Shown piece after piece: positions 7,231 through 46,149 of a stretch of DNA of 64,000 nt (positions are counted from its first letter, which is position 1; every line of letters starts with the position of its first letter). The position numbers and the translations under genes were made by a program. Location of the stretch: the NCBI RefSeq assembly GCF_006345805.1, contig NC_043021.1, positions 13,888,001 through 13,952,000 of the forward strand. The letters run 5' to 3'. Source of the DNA: Octopus sinensis (taxonomy: Eukaryota). Under the pieces are notes generated by a model. The model was not told the origin of the DNA. It searched no databases and worked only from the letters and a program-made list of their open reading frames with translations.

Positions 7231-8726
7231 TTTTTATATTTACTGGGTTAAGGCTGGCTTATGGTGAAACAACAAGGAGGAAAGGTAATGTGGTCTTAAA
7301 CTTGTTGTCTGCATAAAAAGTTAGGGTGTTCATGGATGGAATGTCTTTGGTCATAAGGCCTACTGGATCAAGATTGACCTGTGGCTAAACAACAACAAAA
7401 TAACTCCAAATTCTATTATTGCTACAATATGATGTTTTTCTTTGCTATGTGGAGAGGTTGGGTGGATTTTGGTGTTGAATGGGGTGTCAGTGGGGAAGCC
7501 AATTACTTAGCTGAACTTTGTGTCGCCTTGGGTAGCCCTTGGGTACCTTGTCTTCACTCACCAGGCTTTTACAAAAAGTACAACATATTGCAGCACAGTG
7601 ATTTTTTTCCTCTTAAAGTTATATCTCAGGTGTGGATGTATAGTTAAAAAGCTTGCTTCCCAACCATGTGGTCTTGGGTTCAGTCCCACTGTGAAGCACC
7701 CTCGGCAAGTGTCTTCTACTGTAGCCCTGGGTTAACCAAAACCTTTGGTTGATGGAAACTGAGAAGAGTCCATAATGTGTGTGTATGCCCACCACAATCA
7801 CTTGACATTTAGTGTTGACCTGTTTATGCTCTCTGTAACCTAGTGGTTCAGCAATAGAAACTGATGGAATAAATACTGGGTTTGATTCATTCAATATAGT
7901 TCAGTATATTTCTGGCCATTGCAAACCCATGCAAATGAATGGATGGAAAATGAGATAGGAGTTTTGAAATGAGTTTCTGTAAAACTATTTTTTAAACATC
8001 AAATAGCCATGGGGCTCCACCAAAAACAGGGATCAAAGGGGTCCACGGATGAAAAAAATGGTTAAGCACCACTGCTCTAAATGGTTACTCCACCGGCTAC
8101 AAAAAGCATCCATATCACTATTGTATGACACTCTATGCTATGTCTGAATCAAGGGTGAAGGGGTCACATCGTTTCATAGGCCAAGTGGATAAGGGCTAAG
8201 CTTGGGGTTAAACAACTATATATAGCACCACCATCACCACAGCTCTCATTCTTTTTATCTTTTCCCTTTCCTCTTCCATCCTTGCCCATCTATCCTGTTC
8301 ATCAACCACACATCATGCACCCCTGTGGCAGTTTCTTTAATCTCCCTTTGTTTCAGCAGCAGAAAAACAACAACAAGCCCAACAAATGACCACCACCACA
8401 GTTGTCACCTACCACAACAACGATGGCAACTGTAACACTGATGCAAACAACAACAATAACAACAGCAACAACAACAATGATATCAATGATGATGATGATG
8501 ATGTTAATGATGGATTTCCAATGTTTTTTTTTTCTTTAATTTAAATTGTTTTCTCCCCTTGACCATCTTGAAACTAATTCTCTCTTTTTTTTTTCTCTTC
8601 TCTTTTCTCTTCCCCTCCCTCTCTCTCTCTCTCTCTCTCAAACTCTCTCTCTGTCATGCACACACACACACATACACACGTGAACATCCACTCACACCGA
8701 TATCAATACCGTGTGTGTGTACTCCT

Positions 8727-8757
<31 letters not shown>

Positions 8758-8897
8758 CATATGTCTCTCTACATATCTCTCTGTCTATCACTCTCTCTCT
8801 CCTATCTATCTATCTATCTATCCTTCTGTGTTTTGCTCTGTCGCTGGGTCTTCCTGCTCTCCCCAACCGTCCGTCCGCCCGTCCGTCTTGTCACCAG

Positions 8898-9006
8898 TAT
8901 TCTACAATATCACGTAAATTTGTTGAAGTCATGAATGATTACAACACAACACAGATAGACTACAGGGACCGGTGTAAAGCACGCATAAAGAGGCAAATGG
9001 AGATAA
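8898..9006 (+). CDS. Syx1A: Syntaxin-1 exon 6a (divergent alternative Hc-helix exon): [36 protein letters not shown](T)
   Basis: Acceptor gtcaccag|TAT and donor ATAA|gtaagg; 109 nt, phase 0 to phase 1. The translation matches the syntaxin-1 segment [36 protein letters not shown], and the exon has the same length and phase as the vertebrate STX1A exon. Confidence 0.9.
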
Positions 9007-10620
9007 GTAAGGCTACAATAGATTTGGATTTCACCTTCTTCTCTTTTCTCTTCACTTTTAATTCACTTTTTTCTTTCATTCTTTCTTCACGTCACCTAGC
9101 TGTAGACTACTTTCTCTAGATGGATGTCCAAGCGCGTGTGGATACGTATGTGTGTCTGTTTGATATGGTGTGCATATGACTCTGTGTGTATGTATATATG
9201 TGTGTGTTGGCGTGGGTGTCCAACCCATGCCAGTATGGAAAATGGACATTAAATGATAGCGTGCGTGTGTGTGTATATGATGCTTAAATATAAGCTTGTG
9301 TGTGTGCAGGTGTATGTATGTGTATTTGTGTATACCTACTGGTATAACACATGCCATATACAATATGCCCAATAATAATTAAGAAGTACAGAGTATTGAA
9401 AAGATTCAGGACCTTTGTTCTGTCTTTGTTGGGAGGGGCCCCACATATATCTGAAGTAATGGGGAAACAAGAATAAACTAAAACCAATCCTTTCATTATA
9501 ATAAGGGACCAAGAAACAGAGACTTTGATAAAAGCTGGAGAATGATGGATGATTAAATATCTTGTGAGATTTCTTTTTATGTCCCTCTATGTTATAAGTT
9601 CAATTCCTACCAGGACTGAGTTTGTTTTCTATCCTTGGTGAAATAAGATAGCAGCATTGTGGGCCTCGTGGAGGCGATGGCAAGTGACCAAGATTAGCAG
9701 TATACTGTGCTTGAGAAGTGAAATTGCGGTTGTGGCTAATGCCAGTGGCACTTAATTAACACCTGTGCTGATGGCATGTAAAAAGCACCCATTACACTCT
9801 CTTGAAAAACCGTATCTGTGAAAATTCAAGGATGATAGTGAGAACAATCAGGCTGGATGTGAGATGGCCGTCATCTGACAAGATGAGGCAAACATCATTA
9901 ACACACAATTCTCCATCTGAGATTCTTAGGTGAATAGGTGCACGCACTCGGGTGCATGCAGCAACAGCTCGACCAACACACCAACTCAACCACATATTTA
10001 CAAACACCGGGAATTCTCATAACTCAAAATGTATTGTCGCTTTGTTAATAACTGGCTTGAACTCTCTCAAGTCAAAGAAAAATCATACATACCAGCCAAT
10101 TCACCCAAAAATCACCATCAGATCATCCTACCCTCTACTATCTTATTCGGTAGTGTGATTCCTGAACATAAACACAAAAGATGGGATGGCCACGATTTAT
10201 GAGTCTTTTAGATACAAGCCTGATCTATTAGTGCTGATCTGGGACTCAACAAGGAATTAAGAATTGCTCTGCACAGAGTTCTGAAATGCAAATTAGAGTT
10301 ATCTCCCTTAGATTATAAACCTTTTCTCCCTGCAACAAAGCCTAATTCATTCTCTGTACTTAATGAATCACACACACACATGTACATCTTTTTAAGTACA
10401 TATATTCGTACATATGTATTTGTGTGTGTGTGTGTGTATGCGTGTTTGTGTTTCTTTTCTCTTACACCATTTTTTTCTCTTTTTTTTTCCTTTCACTTTT
10501 TCTCTTCTCACGAAATATAACTTGGCAATATACCTATTTATATGTTTTTATACTAACGTACACACACACACACACACACACGAAAATACCTGTATCTATA
10601 TATGCAAAGCTCTGTGTGCT

Positions 10621-10662
<42 letters not shown>

Positions 10663-11314
10663 CATATACATACATACTTACATATATATACACACGCACA
10701 TACACTTGCACAGCCAAACATTCATATATGCACACATGTTTTAGCTGTGGATCTCCTATATCACTCTTCTGTTATATATGTGACTGTTTAAACATGCATG
10801 TTCACACATACACATACTCATGCATTTTATTAATTACTGCATTTCATTATCATCATCATTATCATCATCACCATCACGTTATTTCTATTTTCCTACAGCA
10901 TTTCTATTTGTGTGTGTGTGTGTGCATGCAGCACGCACACACACCTAAGCATTTGTACATGCACATACAGACACCTTCTCACAGTTTCTTATGATTCTGT
11001 TTGTAGCGGTCACCAGTGTCCAGACCCCGTCCATCTATCCATCCTCCCTCTATATCAGAGCCACTTCCATTTACTTCCTTATTCTTGATGTTAATCTTCT
11101 TTTTCTGATTTCTTTTTTACCACTTTTTTTTTTTTTCACTGACTCCACATGGAGAAAAAAAAGAGTCTTTAATTTGAATGCCTATTTTGTTGTAATTGTT
11201 GTTGTTACTATTATTATCATTTTTACTATCGTTATTATCATTATTATTATTAGTAGTAGTATTATTTTATTACTATTATTATTGTTGTTGTTTGCTGGAC
11301 TGATAACTTCATTT

Positions 11315-11357
<43 letters not shown>

Positions 11358-12056
11358 CATTTAGGTAGATAGTTATTTCATTTGTGTTTATGTTATTGAC
11401 AGTAACTTTGAAGTTTAGAATAGTAGAAAGGAGAGGGGGCAGGGTGGGGGAGAGAAATCTGTTCAAATGGGAGATGGCAGTGCCATAGATTTAGTATCCA
11501 GAAAAGTAATATTAATAACGACACACAATTTGTCAGTATTTTATTTGGGATGGATGTGAGTGTAAAGTAGAAGAGGTTTATGGATGGAGTTAATGCTAAA
11601 ATGGAGATAATTCGGAGAGGTGGTTAAAGCATTTGGGGTGTGTCTGAAGGGTGCAATAATTTCTCTTCTGAGATAAAGCACGGTGCATTCATTGCAAAAC
11701 TCTATCCACTTAATACTCTACAAACCCCTACCTGTTAACTTATTGCACACTTCAGCTGCCCTAAACCTCCACCTATCTCATCTTAATTGTTAACCCTTTC
11801 TCCTAATTCCCTCTTTCTAGACAGATGCATAAACTTCCACCTGAAATTGCTCTCTCATTTGGATTCAGTTTCTCCCCTCTACAACATAGAATGAATACTT
11901 AGGGTTTGCCTTAGACCCAGCTTCCAAGTTGCTGTCAATAGATTTTATCATCAATATTAGACTACACTTTTGTATTGGCTTCTTTATTCAAGCAATACAC
12001 ATTGTTATTCTATGCATATAAAGATACTTATTTTCAACTATATATATGTATATGTA

Positions 12057-12112
<56 letters not shown>

Positions 12113-13461
12113 TATATGCATATATGTGTGTACATAAGGTGTAAGTTGTATCAACAAAGAGGTATGTCTCCCTTCTTTTTTCTTTGTTTTATTTTTAATT
12201 GTTTTTATTTTAATTTGAGATTATATTAATTTTTCAGTTTAATTTAAATATATTTGTGGGTATTTATACATGTGTGTGTGTGTGTACAAGAGAAAAGTTT
12301 CTTTTTTTTTTTGTAGTGGAAAGACAGGAAGTTTGCTTAATATAACCTTATGTAAGAAATGTGTAGTGTTTGATAGTTTTGTCATCTGTTAAATAAACAG
12401 GTTTAGACATCTGGTCATAGTTTCTGGCAGTCAACCCCTTGGCTGACTGTATCTGCTCAACAACTGTACTCAGATGATGAGAACAGGTAAACCTTATTCT
12501 ACTATAGAGATATTGTTGTTGTTTGTGAGTTATTTTTTTTTCAGAGGGTTTTTATTTTAGATGAAAATAAAATCCTGCCCAAAATAGAGGGTTTTTTTTT
12601 TTTGTTATTATATTAGGGGGTGTTTTGTGTTCTTTTCTCATCTTGCAAAATATTTGGTGACCCCACTAGTGCCCGTGACATGAAAAAAAGCACCCAGTAC
12701 ACTCTGTAAAGTAGTTGGCATTAGGAAAGGCCTGCAGTGACAGAAACCAAGCTAAAGCTCATATTGGAGTTTGACACAGCTCATAGGATGCTGTCAAACC
12801 ATCCAATCCATGTCAGCATAGAAAATGGAACACTAAATGATGATGAGGATGTGGTGCCCGTATGACTGCTTTTTACATGGCACACCAACATGGGTGCTTT
12901 CTATGTGCCACTGGCATGGGTGCTTTTTATATGGCACCAGTATCAGCTGGTTCACCAAGTAACTTGGAAAACAAGGACATCTCAGCTGAAAGAGGAAGAG
13001 GAATGGGAAGAAATGGCCATGTGCCAGGTGAGAGGTTTGGGTAAGAGAGACGGTCAGGGTTAACTGTCACATATAATTCTTCACATTTCTAATACAAGGA
13101 TGTATTGAGTACATTTCTAGTTTTGTACAGTGTGTGTGTGTGTGTGTGAATGTATATATGTGTATGTTGTATACCCACATACGTTTTGATACATGCAATA
13201 CACTCTACAAGATTTTATTTTTTGTTTAATCCAGGATTTGTTTTATTTACTTCTCCCTCCATAAATCCTTTTTAATAACTGACCTTCCCGCCTCCCACCT
13301 TGTTATTTCATTCCCTCGATTTCACAACCCCCACTACGCTGCCAATGTTTCCTCACCTACATATGTGTGTGTGTGTAATATTACATGGAACTCTCAGTGT
13401 AACTTATGTAACTATAAGTAAATGAAAAGTTTAGTGTGTATAATACACACACACACATTAA

Positions 13462-13545
13462 TAGCTCTGAAGAGGCTATAGAGGGTGTTGCACAAGCACT
13501 CAGCTCCAGTGCACTGCTTCTTATAAAAGAAACAGCTGTAAGCTA
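13462..13545 (+). ncRNA. Degenerate Penelope-type minimal hammerhead motif
   Basis: Stem I UAGCU/AGCUA, CUGAAGA (13467-13473), long poorly paired stem II, GAAA (13529-13532), palindromic stem III CAGCUG, then UA. Confidence 0.35.
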
Positions 13546-13865
13546 ATGAAATTGATTATGTGGCTCCTGTTCCTTTATCATTCAGTAACTGACATAGTCA
13601 CATGAGTGTGTGTGTGTGTGTATATATCTATCTATCTATCTATCATATATATATATAGAGAGAGAGATAGATAGATAGATATAGATATAGATGTAAGCAT
13701 GTATGTATGTGTCTGTACACACACACACATATACACATATATACACTCACACACATAACCACTTATTATAATGATGCTCTAACTCATCCTCCCTCCCTCC
13801 CTGCCTCCCATCTTAGTGCCCAGGCTTTTTCTTTTTTTTTCATTTTCCTTTCTCTCCTGCTCCAG

Positions 13866-13974
13866 CACGCCACTCTTTCCCGTAAGTTTGTCGAGGTTAT
13901 GAATGATTACAACACTTGTCAGATAGACTACAGAGAGAGATGCAAGGGCCGTATACAACGTCAATTGGAGATCA
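13866..13974 (+). CDS. Syx1A: Syntaxin-1 exon 6b (canonical-like Hc-helix exon): [36 protein letters not shown](T)
   Basis: Strong polypyrimidine tract, ctgctccag|CAC acceptor, ATCA|gtaaga donor; 109 nt, phase 0 to 1; near-identical to the conserved syntaxin-1 sequence. Confidence 0.95.
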
Positions 13975-14082
13975 GTAAGAGATATTGGAACAAACTTTCA
14001 TAAACTGTTTTACTCTCTCTCTATCTATCTATATCTCTCTTTCTCTTGCTCTGCCACCATCCCCACCTTCTTTCATATATGC

Positions 14083-14128
<46 letters not shown>

Positions 14129-14274
14129 TATTGTATGTTCATCCATAATCTAAATGTATGTCACTTTGGTGTTATGTGTATATGTATGTATAAGAGTAGG
14201 TTTGTGTATATATGTATAAAATGTGTGTGTTTGTGGGTATGTTTATATGCAGCTATGTGTGTGTTTTATATATC

Positions 14275-18651: not shown

Positions 18652-21600
18652 CATTTACATTATTATTTATATTATTATTATTATTTTGATTATTACTGTT
18701 ATCTTTATTATTCATTGTTTGAGAAATACATCGATTGTTTCCTTTCATTATCAATTATTATTATTTTTATTATTATGATTTGTAATATTATAATTGTTTC
18801 ATTAATGAAGATTTCTAATCAAAATTAAATTTATACTAATTTTTAAAAAACTCTAATTCGTGATGTAGAGACATTTCAATTGGTTGTTTTTTTTGTGTTT
18901 AATTATTTAATATTTTTGTTGTTTTTTTTTATATTCACAAGTTATTTTTGTAAATTAAGAAAATTATAAAGAAAAAAACAATCCTTTATTTTCTTTTATA
19001 TTTCTTTATTCATAATTCTTTTTTTTCTGTTATTTTTTTCAACTTTACCAATTTTCAAACATAATTTTTCATACTTTCACCTTCTCTCTCTGTCTTCCCA
19101 CTCCCCCATTCACACCATATGACATCATTGTTATCCCCCCTCCCACAACTCTACCATCACCCAGCTTTGCTTCCAGGCTCCACTATCACAATGGGAATCC
19201 CCACAACTCCTGCCATGACCACTACCACAAATCACCGCAACCATTATGATTTTCATCATCACAACCACCAGTCATCATCATCATCATCAACATCGTTACC
19301 ACTGCTGCCATCAGGATTATCATCATCATCTCCATGAGTATCATCATCATCATCACCAATAATACCACAAAGTCTGTGAGCTGGCAGAATTACTACCATG
19401 CTGGAAAAATTGCTTAACAGCGTTTCTTCCGTCTTTATGTTCTGATTTCAAATTCTGCTGAGGTCAACTGTGCCTTACATCCTTCTGCGGTTGAGGCCCT
19501 GTGTCTATAGTAGAGAGGACTGTCTATAATACAAATGCTATTGTCATGACCACCACCACTTCCCTCATCATCATCATCATCAGTGTATATTCTTTCAGTT
19601 ATTGGGATTTTTGCCTCTTCATTCGATCACTTTCCTTGAATCCCTTTTTATTTTCTGTCCCTATCTATTTGCTTACTGATCCCTTTACATTGCATAATCC
19701 CACTGCATCTTTCACTCTTCCCCCTCCGCTCTCACACACTCTCTCTCTCTCTCCTGACCCTTGGTATTTTCCATGACCAGTCATTCCTACTGTTGAGTTG
19801 TATTCTGTGCTCCCTGTCCATTTCTTATGGACCGAGGGGTGTAGTTATATTTAAACCTGACATGTTGTACCTTATATATGCTATGTACAGACCCAGTCTA
19901 GCACCTCAGCATCCCGTCTCCCCACCCCATCCCAGTATCCCTGCTGTAACTATCATTGATCAATTTCAGTGATTGATTGATTCTTTAAATGAGACTAATA
20001 TAGGTTCTTTAATGTTTAATAATGACCAGTTCCTCTCTCTCTCTTTCTTTCTCTCTCTGAGTTCCCAAACTATCCCTACCTTTTTGTCTTTATTTTTACA
20101 CCCCACTCTATCAAATCTTTCATATAATATGCTAATACTAATAAAGGATTACTTAAATACTATATAATTTATTATATATGTATTTTTAAATATTCTCACA
20201 CGCAAACACACTCATGACCGAATATCAATGCTAAATCTTATTATTTTAATCACATTCTTCTGAATTTCAGTTTTTCTATATTTGTCATGATAAAAAAAAA
20301 GTAAAGAAAAAGAAGCAACAATATAAATATATAATATTGCTCATGTTATTTGAACCTCAATCTTTTGATTTACATAACCATTTTCCCACACACTTTGCTT
20401 TCCAATTTTTACTTTATGAAATTCTTGGAATTTCACCTTTCACTTTTAAATTTTTAGGTCTATTTTTTCATTCTCTATAGACATGGTGGGTTCGTGGCAG
20501 AATTGGTAGAGCCTCAAAGTACTCTGTAATATTTCCCCTTATGATTTGATTCAAATCCTACTGTGACCAACTCTGTCTTTTATCCTACTGAGGTCTGTAA
20601 GATGATAAATAACAGTAAAATTACTCTATATGCAGCATTCAAACCCTTGGCTAGAAAGTTCAACCAACTCTTCACATAAAGGAGATGATCTAGTATGACC
20701 TTGGCCCAAAGACTGAATATTTGAAATATTTAGCTACAATATCTCTTTGTATTCTGAGATCAAATCTCATAAGGGCCAACTATAACTTCCACCCTTCTGG
20801 GGTTAATAAAATAAAGTACCAGTCAAGATGAGTTAACTATTACTTAACTTGTAACAAAAATTCAAAAAGAAGTCAAGTGACTTCTACTATAGTCTGAAGA
20901 TGACCAAAGGTTTGTGAGTGGATTTGATGGATGGAAATTGTTAGAAGCCTGTTGTGTGTGTGTACACACAGACACACACACACATATATTTGTGTACGTT
21001 TGTCCTCGAGGGTTTTGTAATTTTTTGCTGAATGGACTGCACAGATGATTTGTTTATGGTGATTGAATGTTTGTGTTGTACATTACCTCACTCCCCCCAT
21101 CAAATTGATATTAGCTGTACAGAGGCACAATGTGCCACAAATCAGATCACAGTGATCACAAAGCAACATGAGGTGAAGGGTTTTGCTCAAGAACACAACA
21201 CACCATCCAATCCAGGAATTGAAACCATGATCTTGCAATCATGACTACAACACCTGAAACACTAACCTCTAGGACATATGTATGGATATATGTACCACAC
21301 ACATGTGATTTTCATATACAACAGACCAGAGCACTCAGTGTCAGCTTTGTGGAGTTTATTAAACTATAGTATAATACAGTCGACAGCAAATTCTATGATG
21401 CTATGAATCATTCTGTTAGGTTACGTCATTATTCTGTAATTCACTTATCAAGTAGACAGATATCCTGTGAGTGCTTGAAATAAAATTGAAGTTTCTGAAT
21501 TTCCATTTTTGTTCAAAACTGTTCATAAGCTATTTGGACACCAGATAAGTGAATTATACATTTATGTCGCAATGTCATGAAATGGATTCCAGTATTCACT

Positions 21601-21825
21601 ATTGATTGAACAGATATATATATATATCTATAAAATTACATTTGTTTTTATTCTGAGCTGATGCTTCCCTCTGTTGCTACTCAATTTTCATAATTATTTC
21701 AGCTTTGAATAAATTTATAAGACTCTAGAGGTCTAAAGAACATCTAAATATGTACAAAAAGCACAACGAGATAAAATTCAGAAATGAGACACATTTGCAA
21801 TATTTGTGCAAAGTTTTAAGGCAGC

Positions 21826-22035
21826 AAGCTGGCAGAAACATTAGCACACTAGGCGAAATGCTTAGCGGTATTTTGCTTGTCTTTACGTTCTGAGTTCAAA
21901 TTCTGCTGAGGCCGATTTTGCCTTTCATCCTTTTGGGGTCGATAAATTAAATACCATTTGCATACTGAGGTTGATCTAATCGACTGGTCCCCTCCCCAAA
22001 AATTTTGCGCCTTGTGCCTAGAGTAGAAAAGAATA
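21826..22035 (+). mobile_element. Family-A SINE (representative dispersed copy)
   Basis: Same head, B-box-like and gcctttcatcctttt motifs; other dispersed + strand copies at about 18410, 19376, 25655, 26765 and 30128. Confidence 0.8.
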
Positions 22036-23424
22036 TTTGTATAAATATATATATATATATATGTAACATTGCCAAAAGACAAGCAGACAGAATGAGACAT
22101 TGGTTAATGTTATTCATTCCTAGAACTCTGTTACTTTGGGTCCCCACCACCAGGAAGAATAATTGTGAGAAATTACTGACTCTGACTGCCCACACCACCA
22201 CCACCACTACATTGTCAATTAACCTATTTCCCCTCACCATCACACTGTTTCCTACAAACATTTCTTCTTTCTGTGGACAAATGGTTATGTTTATATCATT
22301 TTTTTCATTTCCATTTATATGTAAAACGTGTATGTATTGATGTATATGTATGTATAGAAGATGGCCCCAAAATGTGGATCCATAGGAAGTTTGCCATATA
22401 TGTATATATTCTTTTACTTGTTTCAGTCATTTGATTGTGGCCATGCTGGAGCACCAGCTTGAAGGGGTATTTTTTAGTCAAACAAATTGACCCCAGGACT
22501 TATTTTTAAGCCTATTATTTATTCTGATGACCTCTTTTGCTGAATTGCTAAGTTACAGGAATGTAAACCCACCAACACTGGTTGTCAAGGAGTGATGGGG
22601 GAGACAAACACAGACACAGAGAGAAAGGAGGGAGGGAGGGAGGGAGAGAGAGGAACATTAAAATGTCTGATATTAAAAAAGGTGAGAATCAAGTCAATGA
22701 TGCCAAATAGGCCTCACCAGAATGTTTGTGCCAAAATGTTTTACAGCCACATGGATCAAATGTTTCCATGAAGCTGTATCAAGAGATAAGCTATGTTGAA
22801 TGGTTATTTCAAATCTCTGGACTTTAATTAAATGCATTTTCATCTAATATTTTCCCCCTTGTGTTTGGTAGACAATAATCTACCAAGTCAGTAGTTTGCA
22901 GGAATCAACCCAGAACCCAGAATTATTGGTGCACTGAAAGAGGTAGACATATCCACTTGCAACGGCATGAGTATATAGGAAAAGATCAAAAGTTACTAAG
23001 TCAATGGGCTTGAAAATATTCAGATAGTAGCTTGCTTACCAACCACATGGTTCCAGGTTCAGTCCTACTGTGTGGCACCTTGGGCAAGTGTCTTCTATTA
23101 TAGCCTCGGGCCGACCAAAACCTTGTGAATGGATTTGGTAGATGGAAACTGAAAAGAAGCCCGTCATGTATATGTATATATATGTGTGTGTGTTTGTATG
23201 TCTGTGTTTGTCCCATCAACATCACTTGATAACTGATGCTGGTGTGTTTACGCAAAAGCGACCGATAGAATAAGTACTAGGCTTACAAAGAATAAGTCCT
23301 GGGGTCAATTTGCTTGACTAAAGGCGGTGCTCTAGCATGGCCGCAGTCGAATGACTGAAACAAGTAAATGAGTAAAAGATGTCAAAGGTCACCAATTTGA
23401 GAACTTAATGTAAATTTCTGAAAT

Positions 23425-23652: not shown

Positions 23653-25099
23653 GCAAATTATTTGTTCTCTTTTTATGGATTCAAACTTTTGAGCCATCTT
23701 GTTTACCTGTATGTAAACACATATATCTGATAGTATGTGTGTGTCTGTGTCTATTAGTTGCTTTTTGTACAAAAAAAAAAGAAGTTAAAAAAAATAAGAA
23801 ACTTGAGTATGCTTGGTATTTGCTCATTGTGCAGAATATTGTGAAGAAGTGTTTTTGTGCTTTGTGGTAACTACTTACAAATTGTGCTGTGCTGGGGACC
23901 AGTATATCAAAGAAGAGACCCAGTGTTTCCTCTGTGTGTCATAAACCACAACTAAAAGAGGTTGAGGTAGGATTTGCTCTCAGACTTCGTAAAAGCCTCA
24001 TCAGCAATGATTACCAACGCCAAACAGATCCATAGATTGGTGTGGGGAGGAGGTTATTGCCTGAGTAGTGCAAAAGTGTCATTTCCGAGGAATAGGGGAT
24101 TACTATCAAATGGTAGCTGCAGCAATGCACTGTTACAGCACATTCCCCCATACTACTGCTACTACTACTACTTATAAATTTTTCACTTAAATTTACCTTT
24201 CATTTACCAATGAGCGCAGCTCTCTCTACAAGAATGATTGTATAAATTCTTTGAGTTCAGACAAGTACAGTTCTGTATTGTTAGTGACCATACTCACATG
24301 TATAACATAGAAACATACATGTTTGTATGCATATGTTTGTGTGGTAACTTGTTACAAACTCCTGTAGTATATTTACTTTACTCTCACTGATGAGTGCTAC
24401 TATCTTTGTATGAAGCAGCTGAGTGTACAAAATCTTTAAGCATGATGGGGTTTGTGTCACTGCTTAACACACACAAAAGCTTACATACATGTGAGAGAGT
24501 GTAGTGGGTACTTTTACGTACCGCCGGCACGAGGCCACTCAGGCTGTTCTGGCAATGACCACGCTCAAAAGGTGTTTTTTGACAGTGGCTAAGAGGGTTT
24601 CTGCACTCCTCAGAACCCCAGAACTGCCTAAATAGGGCCCCAGTACCAGATGCAGTTAAAGGCATCAAACACATGCATACTTACATATATATGTATGCAT
24701 TCCTCCTATGAAGAGTTCATTTCTGTTTTGTTGTCATTAACATCACATTCTTAAGCATCCATCATCTTTCTGTGTTATAGCAAAACTACACTGGGGGAGA
24801 TTTTTTTTTTTTTTTGGTTTCTATTTCCGTTGGGTTGTGTAACCATACAATGGCTTCCTTGTTCCCAGGCTATGACAAGAGAGACTGAAACATGCTCAGA
24901 GTGGTGGTAATCAACCGACCAGGCAGGATTATTACAAATAAATTGTTTTATACTGCACCAGGTCATTCATCTGTTCCATAAATCTATTCATTCAGGGCTC
25001 ACCTGATTGTTAAAAAACAAATGATGACTTTGGAGCCAATTCACCCTTTCTTCTCCTCTTCATTGTTACTAAGAAGAAAATTATTAAATAGAAATCTGT

Positions 25100-30031: not shown

Positions 30032-30105
30032 CTGGCCGTACTACAACTAATGAAGAACTAGAAGACATGTTAGAATCTGGGAATCCAGCCATTTTCACAC
30101 AAGGG
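30032..30105 (+). CDS. Syx1A: Syntaxin-1 exon 7 (Habc-SNARE linker): (T)GRTTTNEELEDMLESGNPAIFTQG
   Basis: Acceptor ttcttgcag|CT, donor GGG|gtatgt; 74 nt, phase 1 to 0, compatible with either exon 6 copy. Contains the conserved linker EELEDMLE, which carries the LE open-state site. Confidence 0.95.
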
Positions 30106-31406: not shown

Positions 31407-31544
31407 ATAATAATGGAGACCCAACAAGCTAGGCAGACATTAGCAGATATTGAGGCCCGACATGAGGATATTATCAAATTAGAAAATAGTATAAGGGAAC
31501 TACACGACATGTTTATGGACATGGCTATGTTAGTAGAGAGCCAG
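31407..31544 (+). CDS. Syx1A: Syntaxin-1 exon 8 (SNARE/H3 helix N-half): [46 protein letters not shown]
   Basis: Acceptor ctctttcag|ATA, donor CAG|gtaggg; 138 nt, phase 0; classic Qa-SNARE motif ending at the zero-layer Gln. Confidence 0.96.
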
Positions 31545-32725: not shown

Positions 32726-32836
32726 GGTGAGATGATTGATCGAATAGAATATAATGTTGAAGCAGCAGTTGACTATATAGAAACAGCAAAAATGGATACA
32801 AGGAAAGCTGTGAAATACCAAAGTAAAGCCAGACAG
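32726..32836 (+). CDS. Syx1A: Syntaxin-1 exon 9 (SNARE C-half and juxtamembrane): [37 protein letters not shown]
   Basis: Acceptor gtaacctcag|GGT, donor CAG|gtaagc; 111 nt, phase 0; conserved [11 protein letters not shown] and [10 protein letters not shown] motifs. Confidence 0.96.
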
Positions 32837-46074: not shown

Positions 46075-46149
46075 AAAAAAATCATCATTATCGTCGTCGT
46101 AATTTTGTTACTAGGTCTTTTGATTGGTCTGGCCTTTGGTCTTAGCTAG
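46075..46149 (+). CDS. Syx1A: Syntaxin-1 terminal transmembrane exon: KKIIIIVVVILLLGLLIGLAFGLS*
   Basis: T-rich acceptor ttttattttcag|AAA AAA; phase 0 fits exon 9; KK followed by about 22 hydrophobic residues and TAG, typical of a syntaxin tail anchor. Confidence 0.88.
   Translation, partial: KKIIIIVVVILLLGLLIGLAFGLS

Follow-up and report, generated by a model that had tools for sequence, protein, structure and literature searches.

We examined a 64-kb stretch of the Octopus sinensis genome (contig NC_043021.1, positions 13,888,001 to 13,952,000; hereafter, the window) and found that it holds the 3' two-thirds of a syntaxin-1 gene in which one exon of 109 nucleotides (nt) is present twice, as the tandem copies 6a and 6b. 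This exon encodes the C-terminal two-thirds of helix Hc and reaches as far as the start of the linker. In syntaxin-1, the switch formed by Habc and the linker is the point at which Munc18 and Munc13 control the gating of neurotransmitter release. Very probably, the two copies are spliced in a mutually exclusive manner and stem from a duplication that preceded the spiralian phyla, and we infer that the choice between them tunes the protein.

Alternative use of exons 6a and 6b

The two copies belong to one gene and are used alternatively, and both mRNAs exist. The Octopus proteins XP_029650843.1/CAI9740855.1 (6a; P0133) and XP_029650844.1/CAI9740854.1 (6b; P0135) differ at eight residues, all of them between residues 123 and 156. 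Protein pairs that differ in exon 6 only were also found in Mizuhopecten (X2/X1; P0164/P0156), Pecten/Argopecten (X2/X1; P0165/P0155), and Lineus longissimus (X5/X2; P0162/P0217), and a further such pair (P0144/P0148) is made up of transcript-derived (∼1-kb) proteins. In squid, three RNA contigs (L007 to L009, from the Logan assemblies of SRR29271472, SRR29271485, and SRR29271476) contain an uninterrupted open reading frame (ORF) of 292 codons with 6a, and a fourth (L010, from SRR6517992) contains 6b with the same 5' untranslated region and flanking exons as the 6a contigs. Each of these four contigs carries one type of exon 6, never both. The Habc structure of Loligo pealei s-syntaxin (PDB 1S94) also holds exon 6a, with a single substitution relative to Octopus, and 6a is thus present in a cloned neuronal cDNA; the squid 6b counterpart comes from RNA-seq contigs only (L010 and P0145/P0146). 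The only sequences in which both copies occurred were unspliced genomic read-through gene calls (P0003 and P0251). These data support mutually exclusive use of the two exons.

A reading of the window made earlier from its letters alone (hereafter, the sequence-only reading) had predicted one copy per mRNA and two isoforms, and both predictions gained support, the first from the squid contigs and the second from the Octopus protein pairs that differ only in exon 6. The points at which it had considered itself vulnerable turned out in its favor, with 6a present in cDNA (1S94) and in RNA contigs, 6a intact at other loci, and exons 7 to 9 single.

Outside exon 6, contigs L007 and L010 differ at four single bases (nt 158, 716, 722, and 758 of the coding sequence). 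The two contigs stem from different sequencing projects, and these differences could be polymorphism, a species difference, or A-to-I editing.

Anatomy of the exon pair

Each copy is preceded by AG and followed by GTAAG (U2-type signals), and the 109th base of either one joins the CT of exon 7 to form a Thr codon (Table 1). The copies share 78 of 109 nt (72%) and 28 of 36 residues (78%). The eight changes between 6a and 6b are Y/H, S/A, I/L, T/C, D/E, A/G, K/Q, and M/L, and the Cys that matches rat C145 is kept in both. By the method of Nei and Gojobori, the copies are separated by 20.5 synonymous and 10.5 nonsynonymous differences; the proportion of synonymous differences (pS) is 0.98, which is saturated, and that of nonsynonymous differences (pN) is 0.12. 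A tblastn search within the window matched each copy to syntaxin-1 with E values of 1e-15 to 1e-17, so the pair is not due to chance, and no third copy of exon 6 was found in the 64 kb. The copies are neighbors in one gene, homologous, and equal in length and phases, which are the properties that we used to define tandem-duplicate exons, and the exons that flank them are themselves single; the same holds in four other genomes. The anatomy given in the sequence-only reading (109 nt, AG/GT sites, phase 0 to 1, splicing to exon 7) was read directly here and is exact; the same eight of 36 differences and the shared equivalent of C145 were recovered, the spacing reported as 4.86 kb measures 4,859 nt, and the many synonymous changes that it noted between the copies, together with the dN/dS comparison it proposed, are reflected in the values of pS and pN.

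The peptide of exon 6a is 100% identical to Octopus XP_029650843.1 and XP_052832643.1, and that of exon 6b is identical to Octopus XP_029650844.1. Of the two, exon 6b is the one that looks like the single exon found in arthropods and vertebrates.

Table 1. Features of the syntaxin-1 gene in the window and loci elsewhere with the same exon pair
Feature	Location	Strand	Description
Exon 6a, syntaxin-1	8898..9006	+	109 nt, phase 0 to 1; equivalent to rat Stx1A residues 120-155
Intron 6a-6b	9007..13865	+	4,859 nt, GT-AG, microsatellite-rich
Exon 6b, syntaxin-1	13866..13974	+	109 nt, phase 0 to 1
Exon 7	30032..30105	+	74 nt; common acceptor for 6a and 6b
Exon 8	31407..31544	+	138 nt; first part of SNARE motif (H3)
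Exon 9	32726..32836	+	111 nt; second part of SNARE motif; one copy in window
Alternative last coding exon, membrane anchor B	46075..46149	+	KKIIIIVVVILLLGLLIGLAFGLS + stop; 13.2 kb past exon 9
Lingula anatina (brachiopod)	L003		6a-type then 6b-type pair
Lamellibrachia satsuma (annelid)	L004		6a-type then 6b-type pair
Nemertean-like ENA contig	L001		6a-type then 6b-type pair
Compact-genome metazoan contig	L002		6a-type then 6b-type pair

Gene identity and neighboring features

We assigned the gene to syntaxin-1 based on the joint presence of PF00804, PF05739, and a C-terminal membrane anchor, together with close identity to characterized neuronal syntaxins. Octopus "syntaxin" proteins identical to the window exons carry both PF00804 (Habc) and PF05739 (SNARE). 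A "syntaxin-like" protein of Octopus bimaculoides matches the 144-residue translation of exons 6a, 7, 8, and 9 at 100% identity, and full-length Octopus syntaxins of 292 residues match the window exons too. Further, the squid orthologue matched rat syntaxin-1A (3C98_B) with an E value of 1.7e-116 and squid s-syntaxin (1S94) with one of 5e-105. The gene spans 213 to 303 kb in the assemblies of O. bimaculoides, O. sinensis, and O. vulgaris. The window holds exons 6 to 9 and one anchor exon, and exons 1 to 5 and the second anchor exon lie outside it. Anchor B matches XP_052832644.1 (O. bimaculoides X2) and XP_029650845.1 (O. sinensis X3) at 100% identity and is used in these isoforms; the main isoform ends in another anchor (KKIAILVCLIILVLVIISTVGGVFGG), which is absent from the 64-kb window.

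The window has a GC content of 35%. Dense GT, CT, ATCT, and AT microsatellites adjoin both copies of exon 6 (positions 8700-8880, 9160-9290, 13600-13780, and 14030-14130) and occur elsewhere as well, and they swamp searches for repeats and inverted repeats.

Distribution and history of the pair

In addition to the octopus, four loci carry a 6a-type exon followed by a 6b-type exon, both of 109 nt and with AG/GT sites (Table 1). Two of these (L001 and L002) were reached through genomic ORF fragments from a 42-residue profile search of a set of 5.8 billion proteins, a search that returned only matches of up to ∼1.75 times the query length. A profile search of 1.84 billion representatives returned further 6a-type fragments and Schistosoma. 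Among annotated proteins, the 6a-type exon was found in Argonauta, Haliotis, Mya, scallops, Lineus, Macrostomum, and Schistosoma japonicum. As judged from these sequences, the pair is common to at least five spiralian phyla, namely, molluscs, annelids, brachiopods, ribbon worms, and flatworms. Daphnia magna has a single exon 6, which is fused to exon 5; the nematomorph Gordionus also has only one, which is 109 nt long and lies between exons 5 and 7. The H type alone occurred in the arthropod, nematode, and vertebrate proteins listed, and all vertebrate syntaxin paralogues seen had the H/L/L (6b-like) signature.

In a neighbor-joining tree of 26 exon peptides, 6a and 6b formed separate clades, and 6b grouped with the outgroup exons. 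Four differences between the types are fixed (rat numbering, 6a versus 6b: 120 Y/H, 123 I/L, 137 A/T versus C, and 153 M/L), and those at positions 121, 143, and 150 are nearly so. The signature of 6a is Y120, I123, A/T137, and M153, usually with S121, D143, and K150. The 6b type is much more uniform (mean, 2.0 differences) than the 6a type (mean, 7.1). Purifying selection on each copy is strong, with octopus-squid ratios of nonsynonymous to synonymous substitution (dN/dS) of 0.011 for 6a and 0.019 for 6b. The sequence-only reading, which had proposed an old duplication under purifying selection, was right in this and understated its reach, since the pair extends to at least five phyla. The simplest history would be one duplication in the spiralian (lophotrochozoan) stem, before the phyla split, after which 6b would have kept the ancestral sequence and 6a would have gained its conserved signature.

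Other arrangements of exon 6 and of its neighbors were seen in the same searches. A genomic ORF from NCBI (P0253, with the related fragments P0121, P0122, P0256, and P0257) contains two tandem copies of exon 6, both of the L153 type and the second with NTVQIDHREKCKERIARQLEI, which points to a separate duplication or to a pair that has diverged strongly. The Lingula locus contains the 6a-6b block twice (21469-22453 and 23913-24403), ∼2 kb apart and with identical peptides, and exon 5 is likewise present twice; these repeats probably reflect a duplication in the assembly and not a set of four exons. In the compact-genome contig (L002), exon 9, which encodes the end of the SNARE motif, is present as two tandem copies (11068-11178 and 11218-11328) that are 39 nt apart, close enough for steric mutual exclusion, and a tandem paralogous syntaxin gene lies directly upstream (8042-8925). 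Lineus isoforms have two variants of exon 9, and Ostrinia isoforms (P0019 versus P0080) differ in exons 9/10.

How exclusivity may be enforced

The exon is 109 nt long at every locus with the pair. Because this length is not a multiple of three, a productive mRNA carries exactly one copy. Inclusion of both copies leads to a stop 6 codons into 6b, and skipping of both leads to a stop at codon 10 of exon 7, each with at least two exon junctions downstream; these early stops match the frameshifts that the sequence-only reading had claimed for either case. Transcripts with both copies or neither would be expected to undergo nonsense-mediated decay (NMD). The invariant length would most simply fit enforcement by the reading frame, and the choice of copy is presumably made by cell-type-specific splicing factors.

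Two other mechanisms were considered and excluded, as the sequence-only reading had also held. Steric hindrance applies where the intron between the exons is below the minimal spliceable length (roughly <60 nt), and the copies are separated by an intron of 4,859 nt in the window and of 179 to 891 nt at the other loci. Incompatibility of U2 and U12 sites, as defined by a 5' site of the form /RTATCCT and a branch site of the form TCCTTRAY, was excluded by the 5' sites, which are all of the GTAAG or GTATG type, and by the absence of the U12 branch motif from the last 40 nt of the introns. Counts of the splicing motifs GCAUG, YCAY, CU-rich, and UGUGU around both exons at the five loci showed no consistent pattern.

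Alternative explanations

The observations above bear on four other explanations. Copy 6a could be a dead duplicate, or pseudo-exon, with only 6b spliced into real mRNA. Its polypyrimidine tract is weaker than that of 6b in Octopus (0.75 versus 0.95), and it is the less conserved copy across phyla, as the mean differences given above show. However, 6a occurs in the cloned squid neuronal cDNA and in RNA contigs from three runs; RefSeq and annotation models contain it in three Octopus species as well as in Argonauta, scallops, Haliotis, Lineus, Mya, and Schistosoma; and its frame, length, and splice sites are intact at every locus, with the low dN/dS given above. This explanation is already contradicted, and we regard it as having next to no chance of being correct. 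Hardly any weight can likewise be given to the possibility that 6a and 6b come from two paralogous genes or from a collapsed or duplicated haplotype in the assembly. The doubled block of the Lingula assembly, identical and ∼2 kb downstream of the first, is an example that has the appearance of such a duplication, but the copies in the window are 28% divergent with saturated synonymous sites and so are not haplotypes; exons 7, 8, and 9 are single and lie downstream of both copies; the same arrangement recurs in five independent assemblies; and the isoform pairs are identical outside exon 6.

The two remaining explanations are less remote, though we consider both unlikely. Exclusivity might be brought about mainly by competing base-pairing of intronic RNA (a docking/selector system, as in Dscam or 14-3-3 zeta) and not merely by the reading frame and NMD. 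In the Lingula intron between the copies, a 9-mer (TACTGATTT) complements the region around the 5' splice site in each of the two copies (P ∼0.03 versus shuffles). No significant intronic complement to the 5' splice sites was found in the window, however, and none comparable in L001, L002, or L004, and L002 lacks any inverted repeat across the exon cluster. The inverted repeats in the window intron between the copies are of low complexity, and the Octopus introns are so rich in repeats that matches there are uninformative. The switch might instead be regulatory, with the two proteins biochemically equivalent and splicing serving to set dosage through unproductive transcripts or simply tracking the choice of promoter or 3' end, an idea to which we assign a similarly small probability. 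The early stops that follow from inclusion of both copies or neither are in keeping with it. In the squid contigs, moreover, 6a is joined to anchor A, whereas 6b is joined to a third type of anchor (KKICIIVIVTVVLAIILALIIWQLSS, anchor D), which hints at possible coupling to the choice of 3' exon. The Octopus models, however, combine 6a with both anchors A and B and 6b with anchor A, so coupling is not obligatory, and four differences between 6a and 6b that are fixed in at least five phyla, under strong purifying selection, are hard to square with a neutral difference between the proteins.

Several points weigh against our preferred interpretation of two ancient, mutually exclusive exons with distinct properties. 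The Octopus isoforms used here are annotation models, and among the accessions returned for O. bimaculoides, XP_052832643.1, XP_052832644.1, and XP_014786390.1 are all 6a. Strict exclusivity and NMD of the aberrant forms are deduced from the reading frame. The absence of the pair outside Spiralia is drawn from the Daphnia and Gordionus loci and from protein lists, with no cnidarian or nonvertebrate deuterostome locus among them. In addition, a single exon on a metazoan contig from a JGI metagenome (3300033060; L011, 4260-4367) has H120 as in 6b and I123 and M153 as in 6a, and three further fragments (P0261, P0262, and P0269) are related to it. This exon complicates a simple history of one duplication with 6a derived, and it represents either the loss of one copy or a clue to the ancestral state. 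Finally, the structural interpretation given below draws on published work on the rat protein and on helical-wheel arithmetic instead of on coordinates.

For O. sinensis and O. vulgaris, the accessions returned do include the 6b isoform, and exon 6b is intact in the window.

Predicted effect on the closed conformation

In the closed form of syntaxin bound to Munc18, Hc extends to about residue 156, and a linker helix lies over Hc and H3 (PMC10895456). Residue E166 forms bridges with R142 and K146, and the contacts of L165 are K146 and residue 150 (PMC10895456); R151 and I155 bind the MUN domain of Munc13 (PMC8728020). The equivalents of L165 and E166 fall in exon 7, which encodes the shared Thr, in part, and 24 further residues that make up the linker helix. 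Residues R142, C145, K146, R151, and I155 are invariant in both copies, and the neighboring positions 143, 147, 150, and 153 switch between them. A helical-wheel estimate (100 degrees per residue) places positions 120, 123, and 137 on the hydrophobic stripe with F127, Y134, and Y141 and position 153 on the face of R142 and K146.

Based on this placement, the 6a and 6b proteins may differ in how the linker folds onto Hc, which would shift the equilibrium between closed and open forms and the dependence of SNARE assembly on Munc18 and Munc13. Most likely, the closed conformation would be more stable in one form than in the other, or its Munc13-dependent opening would differ. A wider proposal, which we advance tentatively and do not hold to be probable, is that all spiralians possess an exon switch ∼550 million years old through which one gene yields two syntaxin-1 proteins with distinct biochemistry. 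The 6b form would be similar to the ancestral one. In the 6a form, the Hc surface that lies below the linker helix and next to the Munc13 "RI" site would be altered, and this would set the closed/open equilibrium and the probability of release differently in certain neurons or secretory cells.

Work on the syntaxin-1 switch has, to our knowledge, relied almost wholly on engineered mutants such as LE and RI. The exon pair provides natural variants that have been kept distinct across at least five phyla, with 8 to 14 differing residues on the C-terminal half of Hc, and the variable residues adjoin those that hold the linker helix and bind Munc13. The isoforms lend themselves to direct comparison in vitro, and the cell types that use them could be mapped in octopus, squid, Aplysia-type, or planarian models.

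The sequence-only reading knew of no description of the switch. This stood in that full-text literature searches (the 1S94 structure paper lay outside them) yielded no paper describing a switch of the Hc exon in syntaxin-1, but it did not stand for the isoforms themselves, since both are already public as automatic RefSeq and ENA gene models. As far as we found, these models have so far gone uninterpreted.

Comparison with known systems

The squid s-syntaxin used in structural work (1S94 for Habc and 1L4A for the SNARE complex) is orthologous to the gene in the window and is the 6a form, and it was deposited as "the" squid neuronal syntaxin. Caution is needed here, as the mollusc 6b proteins found here, such as the genome-annotation model of Lymnaea, carry the other exon. 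Cross-species comparisons may thus have mixed isoforms.

Alternative exons at the C-terminal end of syntaxins (C. elegans unc-64, vertebrate STX2/STX3, and insect Syx1A) occur in the same family, and the window itself holds one anchor exon; those of C. elegans are treated in PMC4946901. Such events alter the end of the SNARE motif or the anchor, whereas the exon-6 pair alters only Hc and the start of the linker and was seen only in spiralians. Vertebrates likewise possess several plasma-membrane syntaxins with subtly different regulatory regions (STX1A, STX1B, STX2, and STX3), but these arose by duplication of whole genes, and here a single exon is duplicated within a single gene. Spiralians would, in these terms, have diversified a core SNARE by exon duplication and vertebrates by gene duplication.

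The closest analogue is the one already named in the sequence-only reading, exons 5a and 5b of SNAP-25, a tandem pair with differences at 9 of 39 residues in which each exon, like exon 6, runs from a helix end into the beginning of the adjoining linker (PMC2581893). Both systems consist of ancient, mutually exclusive tandem exons of a neuronal SNARE, with 9 of 39 residues differing in one and 8 of 36 in the other. The SNAP-25 exons lie in the Qbc SNARE motif and palmitoylation region and are found in vertebrates, whereas exons 6a and 6b lie in the regulatory helix Hc of a Qa-SNARE and are found in Spiralia. The developmental regulation of SNAP-25a and SNAP-25b and their knock-in phenotypes are proven, whereas the exon-6 pair is described here at the level of sequence. 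If the wider proposal of two biochemically distinct proteins is correct, the pair would be the spiralian counterpart of both the specialization of vertebrate STX1A/1B/2/3 and SNAP-25a/b.

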